Source of the DNA: Trichosphaerium sp. ATCC 40318 | Taxonomy: Eukaryota; Protista; Tubulinea | Direction of reading: 5' to 3' | Assembly: GCA_038496445.1 (NCBI GenBank) | Contig: JALMLS010000320.1 | Location: 62,001-126,000, forward strand | Length of the DNA: 64,000 nt | In this document: positions 8,572 to 56,864 of the stretch, one piece after another | Layout: the number at the start of each line of letters is the position of its first letter | Position numbering within the stretch: position 1 is the first letter of the stretch | The notes under the pieces: model-generated | Database searches by the model: none | The model's input: the letters and a program-made list of their open reading frames with translations, nothing else | Told to the model about the DNA's origin: nothing | Translations under genes and position numbers: made by a program

Positions 8572-10095
8572 TTAATACTTTGTGTTTACACCACTTTTGT
8601 AGAGTCTATCAGCAAGTTCTTCAGAAATAGGAGGTACAGATATATACACCACCCTTAGCTTAGTACCTAAGAATGGTTCAATACCTTCATTTGTAATTAA
8701 CGGACAAGCCATAGCATTAAATACTTCCACTCCAAGCAACGACAGAACACCCTTATTTGTAATGAGTGGGCATACTTGAAAACGTACTTCTTTGGCACCA
8801 GCAAAACAAGAAATACCGGCATCAGTCAGTTTATCACAATAATCAACATTGATGATCTCTACACCTTTAAGAGCAAAAGCACTCTCATCTGTAATAAGGT
8901 TACAGTGAGAAAGAATAACATGTTTAGCACCAGAAAGTGCTTTAACACCTTCATCTGTGAGTTGGTTGCATCCAAAAAGATTAATCCTTTCCACACCTGC
9001 GAGAGCTTTGACACCTACATCTGTGATATTCTTACATTCATAAAGCGATATATACTTTACACCAGACAGCCCTTTAAGGCCTTCATCGCCAATATTCGTA
9101 TTATCAGCAAACACTTTCTCAGCGCCTGCTAGAGCCTTAAACCCAACGTCTGTAACAAGCTTACAATCGCTAAGCTTGATCCTACGAATACCAGCTAAAG
9201 CCTTGACACCTTCGTCGCCTATTTTTTCGCAATTATCGAGGTTGATCCATTCTACACCTGCAAGAGACTTTAACCCCTCATCTGTTATGACTTCATTGCC
9301 TGATAGGTTTATCTTCCTTACACCAGCGAGAGCGTGAAGAGAAAAATCTGTAACCTGCACGTGTCTTAGTTTAACAGTATGTGCCCCTTTGAACAACGAA
9401 ATACTGGCATCAGTGAACTGTGATTCTTGGTTGACATCAAGAATACGAGCTCCAGCGAGATGCTTAAGGCCTTCGTCGGTCGTTTTGTCATTATATCTCA
9501 TGTGTACTTCTTCAACACCAGCAAACGCTTTTAAGGCTTCATCAGTTATTTCCTCCAAGTTCCACAAATTTAGCACTTTAACTCCTTTGAAAACTGATAA
9601 AGACGCGTCATCTACTTCAGAGCACGATATCGACACTTCTTGAGCTCCTACTAGGTGTTTAAAGCCAGCACTCGTGGTGTTTTTAAGCGAATTCAACCCA
9701 ATTCTCTTGACACCCTTCAAATACGCTAATCCGGCGTCGGTGATACCTTCTCCATCTTCTGCTTCTAAATCTACAACGCCTGCTAATGCTTGAAGGGCTT
9801 CGTCCGTAGTGTTACAACCAATCTTGATTGCTTTAGCTCCGGCCAATTCTTTTACTAGATCTGGGTCTACAGCGTATCCTACGACGATTTTGGTGTTTCT
9901 CAGCAAGTTTTTGTGTTTTGCGACTTGTTTGATGTTGTCATTGTACACATACACTGTCCCGAGACCAAGGTTATCACGTATGAGGCGGCAGAACTGTTTA
10001 CTGCACAGAGAAGCCAAATTCCTTTGTTTTACGTCTGTAACGTTTTTAAGAACTTCTAATACCATTTCGGTGGGTATTGTTGCGAATAAGGACAT
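8572..10095 (-). CDS. Intronless F-box plus leucine-rich-repeat protein (22-aa repeats)
   Basis: N-terminal IPTEMVLEVLKNV...ASLCSKQF (F-box-like), then about 18 repeats resembling ITDEGLKSLAGVEWINLDNCEK. Probable ATG at 10095 (MSLFATIP). Confidence 0.85.
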   Translation of the reverse strand: MSLFATIPTEMVLEVLKNVTDVKQRNLASLCSKQFCRLIRDNLGLGTVYVYNDNIKQVAKHKNLLRNTKIVVGYAVDPDLVKELAGAKAIKIGCNTTDEALQALAGVVDLEAEDGEGITDAGLAYLKGVKRIGLNSLKNTTSAGFKHLVGAQEVSISCSEVDDASLSVFKGVKVLNLWNLEEITDEALKAFAGVEEVHMRYNDKTTDEGLKHLAGARILDVNQESQFTDASISLFKGAHTVKLRHVQVTDFSLHALAGVRKINLSGNEVITDEGLKSLAGVEWINLDNCEKIGDEGVKALAGIRRIKLSDCKLVTDVGFKALAGAEKVFADNTNIGDEGLKGLSGVKYISLYECKNITDVGVKALAGVERINLFGCNQLTDEGVKALSGAKHVILSHCNLITDESAFALKGVEIINVDYCDKLTDAGISCFAGAKEVRFQVCPLITNKGVLSLLGVEVFNAMACPLITNEGIEPFLGTKLRVVYISVPPISEELADRLYKSGVNTKY

Positions 10096-11884
10096 GTTTG
10101 TTATAATTAGAGCACTGTCCACGGAAATTCCACAGATTTTGACCTTTGTTGCCATGTCATTCATTCATTGAAATACACAAACTCTAATTTGTAGTGGTAA
10201 AGGAGGAATTTCTACGTAAAGTTTGTAAGAGATGTTGTAACGCTTGTGTAATTGTTAAATCTGTTTATTACATGAACGTGTTACAAGGTCTTTAATGAGT
10301 GTTTCTAGTGAGTGAATGTATCTCATGGTGTGAAACATCTTGAATAGACTTCGAGTGACTTCGTGAACGAGTTTCGTGATAATAACTGATGTTCATATAT
10401 GCAAGTGGAAGATTGGTTTGGTGCAACTCCAAATGTCAACCTTAGTGCGCACCAGTGTAGGCTTGCTTACAAATGGGGCAGCCCCAAAGCGTGGACAAAA
10501 GCAAGTATAGTAAAGTTTCCTCTTTGCTTGCGAACCACGTGGCTGTTAGAATGCTAGAAAGCCCACAAAACAACGGTGAGCAAATAAAGTAAGGGCAAAG
10601 TGAGAAATACCTAAAGAGCATGATAGGTGCATTTTTTTTGTACACGTACAACAGAATATTGGCACAGAAGGTCAGAAGTAACGATTATTGCGATAAAGGC
10701 AAGTTGTTTGCCTTCCATCAACTATCACCATTTTATTGATACCAAAAGCTGAAGCTGACACATTTAGCGCTCACAGCGTGTTAAATGATAAATTACAACT
10801 TCTACTATATATAATTCGTTTGTTTATTTTACATCATAGATCAATACGCCCGCTATTTTAGGTTCAAACATCTCACGTGTTACAGAGGTGGAAAAAATTA
10901 GGTGGAATGTACTAAAGATGTCGTTACTAGCTAAAAGGACAGTGCTTTTCTTCTCCAAATAGTGTGCAAAGCCTGTTCAGATTTGCAACTTAGTACCAAT
11001 TAATACCACGACAAGCTATAAGTAAAGTCGTCAATTATTTTTAAGTAAACAACATTTCTTCGCTGTCTTTGGGTGGTTTGATAAGATTAGAAACTTGTTC
11101 TAGAAGCCATTGTCCTTGCCACCAAAATGCTGTTTTCTTCCCTAATAAAACTGATGCTATGCGTCTAACAACTGTGTTTTCGCGATTTATTATACGTTCT
11201 AGAGGCCTACAGGTTTTTCAATTGTGAGAATAGTAGTTCAAGAAACCACTACCTTCTTCCATCAAAAGAGGGGACGTTTTTATTTGTCGATAATTTGCTA
11301 AAAGGCCATTGTAGCACTGTTTGAGATCCATAGTTCCAATACAGATTGTGAACACTTTTCTGAACGAACCATGGAAATAGTATTTTTCCGATCAAGTGGA
11401 ATACACAGTGTGTACTGTACTCAAGATTAACAAATGATAGGCCCGTGCTTGTTATCATACGTTTGTATTCAAACGATTCGTCAATACATTCTCTTTTTTT
11501 TAAAACAGATGGCTATGATTGACAACATGAAGCAGGCGCTAGTTAACTTCAGAACCTAAAATGTGCGGGTAACATTTATGAATCCAGGTTCACGTAATAA
11601 ACACGCATGAGAGTACACACGTGTATTGACCTTTCACAACTATTTTTCCGAAGCCAGCATGCTGTGAACGTTACTTAACTAGTTTTCTTCGATATTTTAA
11701 ATACGTTCTGTATCACGTGTTCATGTTGTAGGGCAAGGTATTTTTCTTTGTTGGATCACATCTTTACAGTGAATAGAATTACCGCGTTTTTCGGGCTTAC
11801 TTACTCAAAATAGTGGGAACTGTGACTTATTGGTACTGGTTTAAAATCATAAACTATCAATCCCAACAAGAACAACAACTCAAC

Positions 11885-12162
11885 ATGCAATACCTTACAC
11901 TTCTCGCACTTGCCTTACTTGCTCTCATTGCAATAAGCATGGTAAACTTCCTTTGCTCTTTTGACATTGAAAAGTCACTAACATTACCAAGGCACAAGAT
12001 GATACTGACCTAACTCGTGATCCTTGTGTACAACGCTGCCTCCTCAAAGGCCGTCAATGCATCAGAGTGGGCAAACTCCTTCCTAAAGTATGTAAAAAAC
12101 GTACTCGTGCCTGCCTCGTAAACTGTATATCAGATGACCCAGTTACTGATACTTCAGCTTAA
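11885..12162 (+). CDS. Small secreted cysteine-rich cationic peptide precursor (75 aa)
   Basis: Exon 1 (11885-11941) is the signal peptide MQYLTLLALALLALIAISM; GT-AG intron 11942-11991 with ACTAAC branch site; exon 2 gives AQDDTDLTRDPCVQRCLLKGRQCIRVGKLLPKVCKKRTRACLVNCISDDPVTDTSA*; AATAAA about 25 nt after the stop. Confidence 0.8.
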
Positions 12163-12641
12163 ACTACTTGTAGTACCTCATGCCAATAAAAAACCCGTAC
12201 CCTTCCTCCTTAGCAAACATTGTGTTAAGTTTCTATCGACGTTTTCAATACCATGCTGCAGGTGGGTGATGTTGTCAAAAGTAATAAAAACCGGCACAGC
12301 ACGGCTTGAGCACGTGATGAAGTAAACAAACTCTTACATGTTTGTTAATCTCGTAAAAATGAACGTTATTTCATGCCAATTTCAAAAAATGTTCTTGAGC
12401 CTCCCAAGGTATTATACAAACAGTAGATGATTTAGAGAATGTTATACTGGCAAGTTTAAATGAGACAGGCGATCACGCTAGTTTTACAGTAGTCGAAGAG
12501 GTGGCAATTTTACATTTACTTCTACAGTATTTATTTTTTTTGTTTTTGTTCTTTTTTTTTTGTACATTTTACAGTACAGCCAAGTGTTTTAACATAAAAG
12601 CACTTAAGATGTACATCACTACGTATATATAAACCAATACG

Positions 12642-15600
12642 CTATGTTCCAGTTTCATCAAACAAAAGTAAAATTTGTTCTGCCTAGAAAAAGGGAGTCA
12701 ATAAAACACAAATGTGCATTTCAAAAGAATAATTTTTTTCAGCTAATAAAAAACTCGACCACACAGTCTTACAGACGAAATTCAACTGTGTAAAGCAACT
12801 CAAGCGTGACACTTAATAAAATACAACATGAAGAAAACACTGAGATAGTGATGGAAAGAAATAATAGACTGAAAAAGTTTCAAACAAAAAAAAAAAAGAA
12901 AGCAAAGAAAAAAACTACTCACCAATTCTCTCTTTACAGAATCGGTACTACTCTCGCTTTCTAAGAATCTACCACCAATAGCATCAGATACAATAGAATC
13001 TACTCCATCACGAAGTCTTAATGTATTCGTTTGAAGAGTAGGCTCTTCAGACGCCATAAGTTCACTCCAAAAGTTATCAACCTCATCACGTATAGCCAAC
13101 ACTTGTGGGCTAATACCCGTATTGGAAAATCCTCTATCTCTACCTTTACGTGGAGGTAGAGGTCTTATACTTGGCGTCTGTTCAACAGCATCAACAAAGA
13201 ACAACTCAATGTCATTGCGTATTTGTATAACTGCTTCACTTGGAAGTGAAGCAACAGATAAGTTTCTATGTAGTTCATCTTCTTTATCAACCTTTGTATT
13301 ATCAAAGGCATCCTAGACAAAGAAATGTAAGTACATTCCTCAAAATAACAACTAAAGACATACTCTGACTGATTGACGAACAGAACGTATCCGTTGTTGT
13401 GTACGATTTCGTTCTTCTATGGAACTCTGAAAAAAAGGGTAAGAATAGAATGTAATGACTTGAAAAAAAAAAAAAAAAAAAAGACGTACTCCTCTAGGTG
13501 ATACAATAAGTCTTTCCATATCATCTAATCCTTCTAGAACTTTAGTCCTTAACATATAAAATGAAGAAGGACTCTTTATTTGTTCTTTAATACCGTCTAA
13601 AAACGTAGACAAAGGCTGAGCGACACCAACAACCTAAAGAAAGAAAAACAATTAACAAACAAAAAAAAGCAAGGCAAGTTCACGGAAAGAATGAGTTCAC
13701 AAGAACGTACATTCCTACGTGTTGAGATCTCAGGATCACTCTTTACTTTGCGACCTGTAGGAGAAGTAACACTAGTAATTACATCCGTTGTATGAGGTAG
13801 TTTTGATTCCATAGTCTTGAGAGCTGCCAACCTTTTTATTTCTTCTTCTTTCTCTCGTAGCTCTTTTAATCGTCTCATACTCTCATCATGTTTCTGTCGT
13901 AGCATCTCTTCAAGACGCTTATGCTCTTCAGCTTTTCTTTCTCTATTTAATCTCTGACGCTCTTCTTCTTCTTGCCTCTCCTTCTCAAGCTTCAAGCGTT
14001 CCTCTTCAATCTATAAAGAACCAAAAAAATCAGCTTCAAAACTTTTTTTATCAGTGTACCCTTTGGCGCTCTGCAGCAACTCTTTGCTGCTCTTCCTCTG
14101 CTTGTGCTTTCATTGCAGCTATTTCCTGTTGAGCTGATATCTTCATAGCATCTATCTCTTGCTGAATCATTTCTTTAGCTTCTGCAGCTCGTTTTCTCTC
14201 TTCTTCAGCAACACGGCGCCTGTTGGGTTTTTTTATTTAGTCACACTTTACTATTCACTTGCGTCGTACCATTTAGCTGCTTCCTCCTCGAATTTTTGGA
14301 CGTTAGATTGTGCGGTAGGTCTAGTTTGTGGTTGTGGTTCAATAGGATCTGATGGTTCAGACACATAAAGGTGTTGAGCACTCACGCTTTTTTTCATGGC
14401 TGAAAAAAAAAAAGTAAATGATCATCACCTTTTTTTTACTAATAGGTTAACTGGTTGGGTAACGCACATGTCTTTGTGGACTCTTCAGTTCCATTATCTA
14501 CAGTCAATCCTATGCGATATCTATCATACAATCCCTTGATAGCAGAGCTATCCGATGCAACCGTTGTAGGTGCTTCAATACTGATGTCTTCAGCACTCGA
14601 ATCAAAATCGTCAGCTTCTTCCACAGCAGTGGGCTTTCCAACATCTTCAATGTGCAATGAAAATCGTGGATTCTGCTCTAGATATGCACGTTAACTTTAT
14701 TAACATTATGGAGACGTACGATTAACCTCATACGAATTATTATTGAGGTCGAAGGACTAAAACTTTAAGTGAGTCTTGATGCTTCTAAAAAAAAACAAAG
14801 AGCCGCAACTTACAAACTCATCACTGTCATCCTTATCCTGAGGTAGTTTGAACGATTCATTGTGTGTAGCACGATTTCTTCCACCTTTTCCCCACGTAGC
14901 TTCAAACTCACGTTTCATAGATCTGAAAAAAAAAAGTCAGAACTAATTCATAAATTAGTACTTCAAATCGTACATTCTGTTGTCTATGTTCATTTCATCG
15001 TCAGCTTGTAAATCACGCATTAACCCATCAATACCATCACAAGCTTCAGATAGATTCTCTCCAACATAAGAAGAGGAATCAGAGTCCGAATTATTGTATG
15101 CAGGTCCAGAAGCAGAGGCAACAGGTTCAAAACGTGCACTCAAAATCTCGCTGTCGTTACTATATTGTACAGATAAATTCTTCTTTAGCCTAGGACTTTC
15201 GACATCAAAGCCTCTATCCTCTTCCAAGTCTTTAGCAACAGCTGAGAGACTCTCAGCACTATATAATAAACATTAAGAAATGCTGAACTAAAACAACTAA
15301 ACGTACGTCTCAACGCTACTGCTTGATTCGGAAGAAGATGCATTATCGCTAGCCATAAACAAGCCATCGCTTGTTATTGTTAATTCACGTGTATGTCTCA
15401 TCATACGACGATTTTTACGCCGCTTTAACAGCTCGACTTGTTGTTGCATAAACTCCATACTATCAACACGATCGCGTACATTACTGGCTACTAAAAAATG
15501 GAGTAAATAAACAAGTAATGGTTGTGAAACAAGAACAAGGCGGTGAGAATATCAACGAATGAGATCATATTGAAATTTCGAACCTGGGTTATACGATGAT

Positions 15601-25844: not shown

Positions 25845-28800
25845 TTAACTACCACGTGGATGGTATGAGTAAGAAAGTTGATAAAGCTTATTTTCATCAT
25901 GTGCTGCTCTAGAAAATACATGGTTTTTAAATTCAGGCACTTCAGTGAGATGGTATGGGATTTTCTACAAAAAAATAAATAAGTAAACAAAATCACCATA
26001 TAACAATCACTATGAGTATAAAAAAAGATCACTCGCTTTCAAACAAACAAGGCAATTGCCTTTCAATCCAACAAGGCAATCCGCAAGGCAAGCGCTTTTT
26101 TTTTCTGTTTTCAATGTCGTGACATGAAGAACGAACCTGAAATTTGCTCAAATCTTGAATAGCACGAGCAAGTTGTCGGCGCTTATCAAAATTAATAAGA
26201 TCCGAGTGATCTCCTTCTTTTACATAATCCTTATTACCTTCATCAATGAAGATTAAGTCTTGCAAGTACACAACTATAAAAAAAAAGACACAAGTCAGTA
26301 CAAACAAAATCAAAAAAAAAAAAAAAAGAGTTCAACGTTTGACGTACCCAAAAATGGAACACAAGGTGGTTTGAGTTTTAGTAAATGTTGTCTAAGTTTA
26401 TTATAACTACCCTCTGACGTAGTCATTGTAATTAACCTATCATAAATACCCTTGATTTTTTTATCAAGCATCTAAAAGACAAACGTTATTCTCTGAACAA
26501 AAAAAAAAATCATCAAAAAAGAAACGTACTCCCCAAGCTTTCAAGCGCCCTACAGCGCCCATATTCAATGCAGCGAAAATTTCCATAATACCATTGACAT
26601 TATTCAATTTATGACATTGCTATAGAAAGAATGTTAAACACGAGAAAAAAACAAGAAAAATAGCTATCTAGTGTACCTCTGCAATTAAAATAAACTTCTC
26701 AATCTTTCTTACTCTTTTCTTCTGTTTATCTTCATTCAAAATCTGCGTTGATACCCACGCAGACATTCTATTAAAATGCTCTGTACAGCTAACTATATTT
26801 GGAGCATTTTCTTCACGTGTTTTCATGTCAGTCCATGCTTGTCCCAAACACTAAGATAAAACAACAAATAAGCCAACATAATCCCTCACAAAAGTTACTA
26901 AAAAGACGCACCTCAAAAGGCTGGATTTGCTTGTAAAGACCATACTCTATGATGGTCATCTGACGAGCAATCTAAACAATTATGAGGGTTTGTTCAATAG
27001 TATAGTACAATCGTACTTCTGTAGCATCAAGGTCAGAAAGAGTAATTGTTGACCAATCAGATACTTTCTTTGGAAGAATAGGCTTTGGTGCAGCTGTATT
27101 GTGTACCACAATACGTTCATCTTGCGGCCCTTTATTAAGTTCATCAATGAGCTTGTGTAGTGTCCTCTCTACAGAAGGGACATGATTGGCCTAACAGAGT
27201 AAGAATCCAAAAACACTGCATCAAAGATAAATAAACTAAGCTTATTTACCGTAGCCAAAGTGTGTATGACTGCATTCGCTTTAGATGGGTTATCTAAGAA
27301 ATCTTGAACCCAAAAATCGTTAATCCACTTGCGTAATAACGCATACGTCCTGAGAAAATGAATGTCAATGAAAAATAAATGTAAACCAAAAATGTAAATA
27401 TTGCTTTTCTCCAAAAAAGGCTTTGAAGCCTAAATACACCCGTGCGTTTTCAATATATTGCTGCTACCACAGCTGCATTCGTACAGTACGCACAAAAAAA
27501 AAAGCAAAATGAATACAGCACCTTACGTTCCCTGGTCCTCACGGACCCAAGTACTGGCAGGGCCATACCATGATTATCTTCGCGGTTCGGAAAGAGACAC
27601 GGAGTTTTCATGGTTGTATGGCCGTATCCATGAGTAGAAAGCAAAAGTTTCGTAGTGGTTGGGTCAAAAATATTTGTTTTTTACGGAAATGGACAATCAA
27701 ATTGACATTGCTTTGTACAGCACAAAGTAACAAAATACAAAACAAAAAATAATATCTCAAATAACGAACCTAACATGTATTACTTGAAGCTGCTTTAAAG
27801 CAGTTTCTGGCGATCCTCAGGTTGTACACGTAATCTAAAAAAAAAGGTAAAAACCAAGAACAAAAAGCTTACAAAACAAAGTACCTATCATCTAACATGC
27901 GAAGCAAATCCTCAGGTGTACAAAAAGAGCGATATGTCAACAAGAAAACATACAACATATTTTGCTCTAATGAAGGAAAGTCAATAATCTATTACCAACG
28001 CACGTGGTAGGTTTTTTTTTCTTTCCCTTTTTTTTTTTAACGCTGAAAACAAAATGCAAACAGTCTTTAAACGTACCGTGACGCTCAGGCGAAGTTATTT
28101 CAGCAATGACACTCTCAAGAGTAGCACCCAAAATTATTTCTTTACCATTTGCATCTTTATCATAGGTAATCATGGTCTCAGCGTGACTTCTCGGTGGAAG
28201 TGGTGGAGGATAGGTTGGAGGCAGTTCATCCTTTGAAAGAATAGGTATTGAAGACCTTGGGTTCGTTGTGTGGTACATGGCTATAAAGCAAGCAAAAGTT
28301 AATAAAAAAAACTGAAAAAAAATACATACCTCCTGGGACAGGTCTTGTTAACCGCCTAGGACCTTGGCCAGGAGGTCTTGAACTTTTCCTTCGTGGATTA
28401 TTAGAGGCACTCTTTCTCACTAAAACACGTTAAGAGTCAAAAAGTAGAAAATACGCTTGGTGCAAGTGAAGAAAAAGACCTACTTTTGCCTTCACTTTCT
28501 GGACCAGATTTGAGTTTTCTATGTTTTGACTTAGCTCTCTTTCCCGAACCTGTCACATTAACTGACTCGAAGTTACGCCTAAACAACGCAATTATTATTA
28601 AATACAAACCACAGACATCAGTAATTAAAAAAAAACGTACAAAGGGCTTCGTTGTGGACCAAGTGCAGAGTTAGAAGGATTTCGTGGTACACCACCACTA
28701 CTAGTAGTATTTGTACGGCGTACAGGCTCACCACCGCTACTAGATCCAATACTACCATTGTAACTACTAGCAGGTGATTCTACTTTATCGCCACCAGAGA

Positions 28801-55634: not shown

Positions 55635-56864
55635 CTAGTTTATTCCAGAGTCATAGTTTTCATCAATCCTCAAAGCTGGTAGGGCCTTTTTAAGCGCATT
55701 TACTTGGCCACGGGATACTTTTTTGAATTGCCAACTACTTCTTTCACGTGTGTATCCATGAATCACAAGTGTGGTTAATCGAGATAGAGAAGACAATTTA
55801 GCAAATCCATAATCAGAAATTTTATAACAATATGATAAATCCAAGTATTCTAATTCTACTAGTGAGCTTAACTGTTCTAGTAATTCATCAGTAGTTTGTG
55901 TAAATCTAAGTGCAAGCTTCTTTAGACTAGTGAGTGAAGGAATAAGTCTCAAATCTTGTCCGGAATTAGTATCCTTTGATGCAAACTGTAATTTTTCAAG
56001 TGAGGTGAAGAATTCTAGGTCAAATGTAGTACTACCACCAAATATCTTAAGAGACTTTAGATTCTTCCAGCTTTGTCCAAGTATACTACATGCCTTTGAA
56101 GCACGCTTATGTAAAACTAGTGCTATTGGTATTTGTACATGGAATGAAGTTATTGATGTCAGTGACTTCAGCTGACTTATTGCTGAATGTGATAAATAGC
56201 ATGCCATGATTTTGAGCTTTGTAAGGTTTTTTAATGAAGCAATAGGTAAAAAACTGGTAATAGTGTAGGTGTAGGTGTAATATCTATGCTTTATGCTGTA
56301 GTCTTCTCCACCATTTAAGTCAAGCCTCTGGAGTGTTGATAGCTGACATATTTCTCTTAAACCCTCATTGGTAACACCCATACACAAGGAGAGGTGTTTA
56401 AGGTTAGTAAACACTGTTAATTTGTATAAAGATTCGGTTGTTAGCCAAGTGAATTTAGCGGCCATTTTCGCTGCTTCTTCCATTGTTATAGGTTTGTTTG
56501 TTCTTGACTCGTGTGAACTAAACTCTTTGTAGTATCCAGGTGCATTTTTTAATTGCAGGGTTGTTACCTTTGTCACAAAATCGAATTTTTCAGTGAAATA
56601 GTTTAGATTATCGATGTTATGTGCTGCGACAGTTGATTTAATACCAGTTGACCATAAAAATGTGTTCCACAAAGAAGACGTTGATGCAAGTCTGTCCTTT
56701 GCACTTTGGTCTAGATAAGCGCTAATACAGTACCACGGGTCAATACCTAGTGAGTACCAATCTGTTTTGGCGTCTGAAATGATATCCGAGCTTCATAATT
56801 AGTATTAGCAATAAAATAGTGACGGAAACATCACAGAGCGTAAATATAAGTACCTTGTAGACAT
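55635..56864 (-). CDS. LRR protein with degenerate F-box-like N-terminus
   Basis: Short first exon MSTS, one intron, then DPWYCISAYLDQSAKDRLASTSSLWN and LRRs (LEYLDLSYCYKISDYGF). Confidence 0.8.

Follow-up and report, generated by a model that had tools for sequence, protein, structure and literature searches.

The antimicrobial effectors known from amoebae are mainly saposin-like pore formers and lysozymes. Amoebapores and naegleriapores, which are small, disulfide-rich and helical antimicrobial effectors of amoebae, carry their six cysteines in a five-helix saposin fold. The cystine-stabilised alpha/alpha scaffold, found in plants, scorpions, cone snails, a nemertean and a sea anemone, is seen as convergent (PMC11722136, PMC13608440). 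Cationic disulfide-stapled helical hairpins of plants are antimicrobial, including single peptides cut from multi-module precursors; cell walls, membranes or DNA are the targets of the Arg-rich plant alpha-hairpinins, maize MBP-1 being a DNA binder (PMC7191063, PMC11591084). Two cysteine motifs describe the alpha-hairpinins, a four-cysteine one (4C, C-X3-C-X(4-20)-C-X3-C) and a six-cysteine one (6C, C-X3-C-X3-C-X(4-20)-C-X3-C-X3-C), with X not being Cys (PMC11591084). The same scaffold carries inhibitor and toxin activities in plants and animals (PMC7191063, PMC11722136, PMC13608440). Among the papers searched, none connects hairpinin-like peptides with amoebae.

The locus described here lies in a 64-kb stretch of DNA from Trichosphaerium sp. 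ATCC 40318, which is called the window in the following; positions without a contig name refer to it. It is a two-exon gene on the forward strand, the spliced product being a 75-residue pre-peptide. An ATG at 11885 opens a hydrophobic leader of 19 codons (exon 1, 11885-11941), which, judged by eye, is a signal peptide with a hydrophobic core of ~15 residues and small residues at its end, as had been proposed from the sequence before. It is followed by a 50-nt phase-0 GT-AG intron (11942-11991) with a branch-point-like CACTAAC at 11976-11982. The coding part of exon 2 (11992-12162) comprises a frame of 56 codons begun at 11992 and closed by the stop codon at 12160-12162; it encodes an acidic N-flank, a cationic six-Cys core and an acidic C-flank. 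The minimum 5' UTR (11854-11884) is given by the start of the longest spliced contig (run X1), and the 3' UTR extends over 12163-12209 with an AATAAA at 12185-12190, a motif kept in the nearest paralogue, and with contig ends at 12187-12209. Left unspliced, the frame from the ATG at 11885 meets a stop at 12013, so that a plain list of open reading frames misses the mature part. The sequence-only reading, made by a model from the letters alone, had held that the intron hides the mature region from the ORF track, and the transcript contigs, which skip the intron, bear this out.

Assembled contigs of public runs were placed on the region 11300-12800 in order to test the splice; such contigs are silent on expression level, strand and true transcript ends, and the library type of the runs is unrecorded. 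Contigs of two runs, X1 and X2, both from one sample, jump exactly from 11941 to 11992 with GT..AG borders, confirming the splice joint that had been predicted. A contig of 284 nt corresponds with zero mismatches to 11854-11940 plus 11991-12187. Exon 2 and the 3' UTR are furthermore covered by X3 (12033-12206), which comes from a different study and carries a different organism label, and by X4 (12048-12202) from the sample of X1 and X2. At 100% identity, exon 2 has a single genomic locus, and this locus contains the intron. The intron-less contigs are consequently RNA-derived, and an origin from a retrocopy or other DNA was rejected. The two-exon gene for a small secreted cationic peptide is real, spliced and transcribed. 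For annotation, this provides a lesson: ORF-based gene calling misses a class of genes whose 50-nt intron parts the signal peptide from the mature peptide.

The gene had been described as sitting alone in about 2.5 kb, which is roughly right, the nearest long open reading frames ending at 10164 and beginning at 12800. The former is an intron-free leucine-rich-repeat ORF (LRR_6 / LRR_4 in the domain scan; 8572-10164, reverse strand), a second one of this type being found at 55635-56672 (reverse strand), and a full-length 5S rRNA gene lies at 27510-27629 on the reverse strand (Rfam RF00001, 92 bits). Downstream of the gene, 104 nt (12398-12501) are ~95% identical to positions 545803-545924 of contig C5. 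In the public contigs over this segment, the other version is present, with 4 differences, and continues into unrelated sequence at either end, so that the segment represents a fragment copy of a transcribed locus elsewhere.

The core of the peptide spans 34 residues (12025-12126, forward strand) and holds six cysteines in the mirror-symmetric spacing C-3-C-6-C-10-C-6-C-3-C, exactly as first noticed. Its composition was likewise read correctly from the sequence: five Lys and five Arg stand beside not a single Asp or Glu, resulting in a net charge of +10. Each of the two 11-residue flanks has a net charge of -3, and the entire mature product reaches only +4 if these acidic tails are retained. 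A search for the six-Cys pattern (with a loop of 4-16 residues) in the six-frame translation of the window returned one match, compared with none in 100 shuffles. The hydrophobic moments (helix 1, 0.52; helix 2, 0.21) do not reveal a clear amphipathic face, and neither a dibasic nor any other recognisable processing site was seen in the peptide.

For structure prediction, AlphaFold2 was run on the exon 2 product with a 31-sequence alignment. The model has a mean pLDDT of 78.8, with ten-residue blocks over the core at 92-95 and the tails below 60; residues 11-26 and 31-47, numbered along the exon 2 product, each form a helix, and the acidic tails are predicted to be disordered. The helix-loop-helix put forward earlier is thus returned as a confident helix-turn-helix with a core pLDDT above 90. 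The positions of the cysteine pairs 12 and 45, 16 and 41, and 23 and 34 each sum to 57, i.e., they mirror each other about the turn and would face each other in the hairpin, and the three cysteines of each helix follow at i, i+4 and i+11 on one helix face. From this mirror geometry we infer a nested pairing C1-C6, C2-C5 and C3-C4. Taken together, it is very probable that the gene encodes a secreted, disulfide-stapled helical-hairpin peptide, with the signal peptide deduced from the leader and the pairing from the mirror symmetry.

Structural searches did not connect this fold with a characterised protein. The best Foldseek match in the PDB had an E of 3.9. VIA-align, run on 48,161 chains, reached a best Z of 6.0 and returned thousands of generic helical hairpins; these matches were rejected as a sign of kinship, Z values of ~5 being background for any helical hairpin. 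In a shape search of the ESM Atlas, the top ranks went to bacterial proteins of 85-88 residues labelled 'cysteine rich repeat' (TM ~0.65 by query), and a feature search of the same resource gave no usable match.

Compared with the described systems, the peptide is closest in principle to the plant alpha-hairpinins, as had been suggested, since both show a helix-loop-helix, here a predicted one, with mirror-placed cysteines. Like MBP-1, EcAMP1 and the vicilin-buried peptides, it would be a secreted and very Arg-rich helical hairpin of the kind often seen in that group; nested disulfides between CX3C pairs are found there, and a nested pairing is deduced for the amoeba peptide. Based on the model, it is thus expected to work like a cystine-stabilised alpha/alpha peptide. 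The spacing is nevertheless a different one, C3-C6-Cn-C6-C3 with rungs at i, i+4 and i+11 instead of CX3C...CX3C, and the amoeba gene differs further in having an intron at the junction between signal and mature peptide. Neither the 4C nor the 6C motif fits, for the outer CX3C pairs lie 24 residues apart with two cysteines between them, and the inner spacing is X6. A sequence relationship to alpha-hairpinins was detected neither by a profile against PDB sequences nor by word search or Pfam, and the vicilin-buried peptide VBP-8 obtained a VIA-align Z of 4.8, which is within the generic-hairpin background. Membership in the alpha-hairpinins was rejected on these grounds.

The animal hairpin toxins acrorhagin I, Cerebratulus B-IV, scorpion kappa-KTx and conotoxin vil14a share the cystine-stabilised alpha/alpha scaffold that is expected for the amoeba peptide. 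Among PDB sequences, a profile of the module reached none but acrorhagin I (PDB 6UX5), whose cysteines were aligned at a non-significant E of 8.6. The outer spacing of acrorhagin I, C3-C6-C ... C6-C4-C, is the one of many of the modules encoded in the Trichosphaerium genome (see below). By VIA-align it scored Z 5.0 (rmsd 3.0 over 46 residues), tied with many unrelated hairpins. It differs, according to two reviews and to papers citing its structure, in its four disulfides, of which one reaches the loop, and in being His-rich and not cationic. Given these four disulfides, an acrorhagin/B-IV type was rejected, six cysteines allowing three bridges at most. A target-specific function, either as a trypsin-inhibitor-like hairpinin or as a channel- or metal-directed toxin against competitors or predators, would be in line with the activities that this scaffold bears in plants and animals (PMC7191063, PMC11722136, PMC13608440), with the outer spacing C3-C6-C ... 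C-6-C-3/4-C recurring in acrorhagin I and with the Arg/Lys-rich loop. We consider it very unlikely: the sequence match to acrorhagin I is not significant, its structural Z is at the level of any helical hairpin, and the loop, the would-be reactive site of an inhibitor, is the least conserved part among the paralogues described below.

Two further six-Cys or twin-Cys classes could be set aside. Saposin-like amoebapores are likewise small, disulfide-rich and helical with six cysteines, although with another Cys pattern and the five-helix fold; neither SapB nor any other Pfam family was detected in the window peptide at E up to 10, which agrees with the earlier statement that the Cys pattern does not resemble that of amoebapores. 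Small Tims and CHCH proteins are synthesised in the cytosol and have no signal peptide. A mitochondrial twin-CX3C/CX9C protein was rejected in view of the hydrophobic signal exon and the lack of a Pfam match.

The exon 2 product was searched against the organism's own 70.3-Mb assembly, and relatives, which the sequence-only reading had suggested seeking, were indeed found. Besides the window gene, there are three distinct intact cationic paralogues, one of them on two near-identical contigs, and one pseudogene. Their identity to the window peptide amounts to 69% for the copies on contigs C191 and C542, 56% for the one on C79 and 46% for the one on C70. As the C191 and C542 loci are 99.2% identical over 1.2 kb, they represent alleles or an assembly duplicate. 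The member on C43 (L006, ~139690-139900, reverse strand) is the pseudogene, with an in-frame TAA in helix 1 and frameshifts that affect both its signal exon and its loop. The view of the gene as an orphan is not supported; it is one of four distinct intact cationic copies, accompanied by a pseudogene, within a larger module superfamily. The set remained unchanged when the search was repeated with the two most distant members; the family size rests on protein searches and represents a lower bound.

All cationic paralogues have an identical or near-identical 19-codon signal exon. In every family member, a phase-0 intron with a length of 50-66 nt sits at the same position. The intron of C191 and C542 starts with GC instead of GT (L002/L003: C191:64161-64452, C542:15175-15466) and is a putative GC-AG intron. 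Common to the family are also the AQDD..DP N-flank and an acidic C-flank of Asp, Pro and Thr. The 3-6-10-6-3 core is kept throughout at net charges of +6 to +10, and the non-Cys residues that are invariant among the paralogues include G-R before Cys3 and R-T-R before Cys5.

Upstream of these genes, a 17-nt palindrome, GGCCGCA-NNN-TTCGGCC, was recognised. A pattern search of the 70-Mb genome located exactly four occurrences, compared with zero for the reversed control: C70:133090-133106 (reverse strand), C79:224353-224369 (forward strand), C191:64515-64531 (reverse strand) and C542:15096-15112 (forward strand). All four exact copies lie in sense orientation ~100-130 nt upstream of the ATG of a cationic paralogue, which makes the palindrome a candidate for a family-private promoter or 5'-leader element. 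In the window, a degenerate form matching 13 of the 17 positions could be aligned by eye at 11780-11796 (forward strand), ~90-105 nt upstream of the ATG.

Comparison with the nearest paralogue revealed how unevenly the window copy has changed. Exon 2 differs by 17 non-synonymous substitutions and one synonymous substitution (dN 0.147, dS 0.027), the core alone by 11 and none, and the signal exon by none and two, respectively. The contrast between exon 1 and exon 2 is significant (Fisher p=0.016); taken by itself, exon 2 shows a non-synonymous excess of marginal significance (binomial p=0.057). Over aligned columns, non-coding divergence amounts to 9-10% in the UTRs, 18% in the intron and ~24% upstream. 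Set against the 9-18% of UTRs and intron, dN indicates that the replacements run at about the neutral rate and not clearly above it. We make no claim of positive selection; the ratio of 17:1 is suggestive only at this p-value and with a dN that does not exceed non-coding divergence.

The polarity of the core changes was determined by taking the more distant paralogues, two in number, as outgroups. On the window lineage, at least 7 of these 11 changes are derived, namely two I->L, two R->K, one E->K, one V->L and one change of an acidic residue to V; through these changes, the window copy alone is left devoid of acidic core residues. Its core charge of +10 is the highest, compared with +6 to +7 in the paralogues, and with a GRAVY of 0.04 versus -0.6 to -0.9 it is far less polar. 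In combination with the degraded upstream motif, the window copy looks like a case of functional divergence or of relaxation of one duplicate. Another reading is a decaying duplicate that would be transcribed under relaxed constraint and have no role of its own. A dN that roughly equals non-coding divergence, the degraded family motif upstream and the fact that the C43 member is already a pseudogene would all be expected in this case. It is nonetheless hardly probable at all, given that frame, both splice sites, poly(A) signal and all six cysteines are intact, that the replacements are directional, toward K and L and away from D and E, and that transcripts occur in two studies.

The substitution pattern also bears on a possible function as secreted signalling peptide (pheromone, quorum or differentiation factor) with a receptor of its own. 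Such ligands are usually under purifying selection, unlike the 17 non-synonymous changes to one synonymous change seen here, a core charge of +10 would be extreme for a ligand, and neither a receptor linkage nor a neighbouring partner gene was found. Despite the small secreted and disulfide-rigid scaffold with invariant surface motifs among the paralogues, their private upstream element suggesting coordinated regulation, and a genome rich in LRR-type proteins, we therefore rate a signalling role as quite unlikely.

The weakest match of exon 2 in the assembly fell in a 286-residue frame consisting of six modules (L007/L008, C1:651663-652520). Used as a query, this frame led to proteins of ~9-10 modules (L009 at C1:364377-366002 and L011 at C28:18463-19986) as well as to two-module proteins and several proteins of ~149 residues. 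Across 31 aligned modules, only the six cysteines are invariant; the loop varies between 6 and 12 residues, the last spacing between 3 and 4. Invariant cysteines around a variable loop are as expected for a helical hairpin with a free turn. The repeat modules are mostly neutral to acidic (+2 to -7), which contrasts with the +6 to +10 of the cationic single-module cores, and they are joined in the multi-module proteins by linkers of the PTDMPTDM- or PTPRPTEEP-type. Pfam/NCBIfam holds no family for the multi-module relative. The large acidic multi-module proteins may be mucin-like coat or wall proteins or, alternatively, multi-peptide precursors.

An hhalign comparison of the four cationic genes with 27 repeat modules resulted in a probability of 89.8% (E 1.8e-6, 36 columns), with single-sequence matches between the two groups at E 1e-3 to 3e-2; the closest type of repeat module likewise has a loop of 10 residues. 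In the multi-module genes, the signal exon comprises 18 codons and is followed by a phase-0 intron, and the mature part starts with AQPTSDPC or GQTNDPC. A short signal exon, a phase-0 intron between signal and mature part, and flanks or linkers of Pro, Thr and Asp are consequently common to the cationic and the multi-module genes. By sequence and gene architecture, we assign the cationic genes to an unnamed superfamily of C3-C6-Cn-C6-C3/4-C modules. Plant alpha-hairpinins likewise comprise single peptides as well as linker-separated tandem modules in one precursor (PMC7191063, PMC11591084), and they differ in that the Pro-Thr-Asp linkers of the multi-module relatives here show no obvious cleavage sites.

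This relationship changes the interpretation of the flanks. Their acidic nature was recognised from the start, but their proposed role as propieces with DP cleavage is weakened. Nearly all modules of the multi-module proteins keep a Pro immediately before Cys1 (DPC, NPC, PSC), which is thus characteristic of the module in general and most simply explained as a helix N-cap, and the C-terminal DDP / PTDDPTDDP flank aligns with the PTDMPTDM inter-module linkers. As a consequence, the acidic DP-bearing flanks look like linker remnants plus a helix N-cap and not like cleavage sites. Acidic propieces and acid-labile Asp-Pro cleavage were downgraded accordingly, the flanks matching the linkers of the multi-module proteins.

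The superfamily also suggests a different function, in which the cationic peptides would be accessories of the matrix, coat or cyst wall: as cationic partners, they would bind the acidic multi-module proteins or acidic glycans and help to assemble or cross-link a surface layer. Homology and a common gene architecture link them to the acidic proteins, the charges are complementary (cores of +6 to +10 versus modules mostly of -1 to -7), the Pro/Thr/Asp tails resemble linkers of a type usually glycosylated in mucin-like proteins, and a defined partner would explain why the RGR and RTR motifs are invariant. Fast amino-acid divergence together with loss of the upstream motif in the window copy would be unusual for a structural partner, however, and the multi-module proteins are themselves of unassigned function. 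We consider this role rather unlikely. The sequence-only reading had named homology to a known structural protein, combined with a lack of activity, as an outcome that would speak against an effector. What was found lies in between: the module is homologous to mucin-like secreted repeats, but the proteins carrying them are uncharacterised.

A word-based protein search with the exon 2 product gave no match. In Pfam/NCBIfam scans, neither the peptide and its paralogues nor the multi-module relative and the external matches retrieved a family, the output being only noise. More sensitive detection was obtained with the module profile, which was scored against 1.84 billion representative proteins and led to 108 matches at E <=1e-3, six at <=1e-10 and none at <=1e-30. 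The missing matches at <=1e-30 indicate that proteins of this organism and its close relatives are absent from that library. The best matches are hypothetical fungal proteins with Ser/Thr-rich linkers (Purpureocillium lilacinum OAQ85104.1, Septoria linicola USW52792.1) and hypothetical bacterial or metagenomic proteins, e.g., a 74-residue one from Pyrinomonadaceae (MDQ1560625.1), the fungal and bacterial matches covering E 3e-22 to 1e-3. The exact C3-C6-C(4-16)-C6-C(3-4)-C module is held by 33 of the 108, most of them with signal peptides and Ser/Thr-rich linkers, and the inner four-Cys part by 105. The fungal and bacterial repeat proteins are mostly neutral or acidic, multi-module and without exception annotated as hypothetical. 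As cysteines dominate the profile score, we take them as relatives on the level of the framework, common descent being unproven. The module in the external proteins P0001, P0002, P0066, P0102, P0105 and others lacks a Pfam/NCBIfam model and is a candidate for a new domain. Defining it would annotate scattered 'hypothetical' secreted proteins of fungi and bacteria.

Considering all of the above, the explanation we prefer is a secreted polycationic defence or prey-killing, i.e., antimicrobial, peptide, which we put forward by analogy as a plausible though tentative assignment. Removal of the signal peptide would leave a product of ~55 residues that folds into an antiparallel helix-turn-helix with disordered acidic tails, the hairpin being held by the three nested disulfides. 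It would bind the anionic surfaces or membranes of microbes, or polyanions such as nucleic acids, comparable to the Arg-rich alpha-hairpinins. The cationic genes form a small, dispersed and lineage-specific subfamily that arose from a 10-residue-loop module of the multi-module secreted proteins. The window copy is a member whose divergence is recent and strong and has raised both its positive charge and its hydrophobicity above those of the relatives.

Secretion, small size, rigidity and the extreme charge suggest such a defence role, and so does, on the sequence level, the conserved signal in front of a diverging mature part with a drift toward Lys and Leu in the window copy. Against it stand the weak amphipathicity, a mature charge reduced to +4 if the tails stay on, and the fact that the nearest genomic relatives are large mucin-like proteins that look structural. 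With the G-R and R-T-R motifs being invariant among the paralogues, a defined binding partner fits better than a generic membrane attack.

What is new is the cationic single-module subfamily, its derivation from a repeat module and the divergent window copy. A bolder proposal, which we regard as doubtful, is that this lineage freed one hairpin module to form stand-alone genes for polycationic, triple-stapled effectors, which would amount to an independent protist version of the alpha-hairpinin strategy on a new 3-6-n-6-3 framework; the window copy would then be neofunctionalising toward a hydrophobic, membrane-active antimicrobial under a rewired promoter. Peptide engineering can draw on the natural core charges, which reach from strongly acidic values to +10. 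If the defence role is true, the family would represent a new class of amoeba effectors on a very compact three-rung scaffold of 34 residues. It would also mean convergence with the plant alpha-hairpinins and the animal hairpin toxins, including the coexistence of multi-module and single-module genes.
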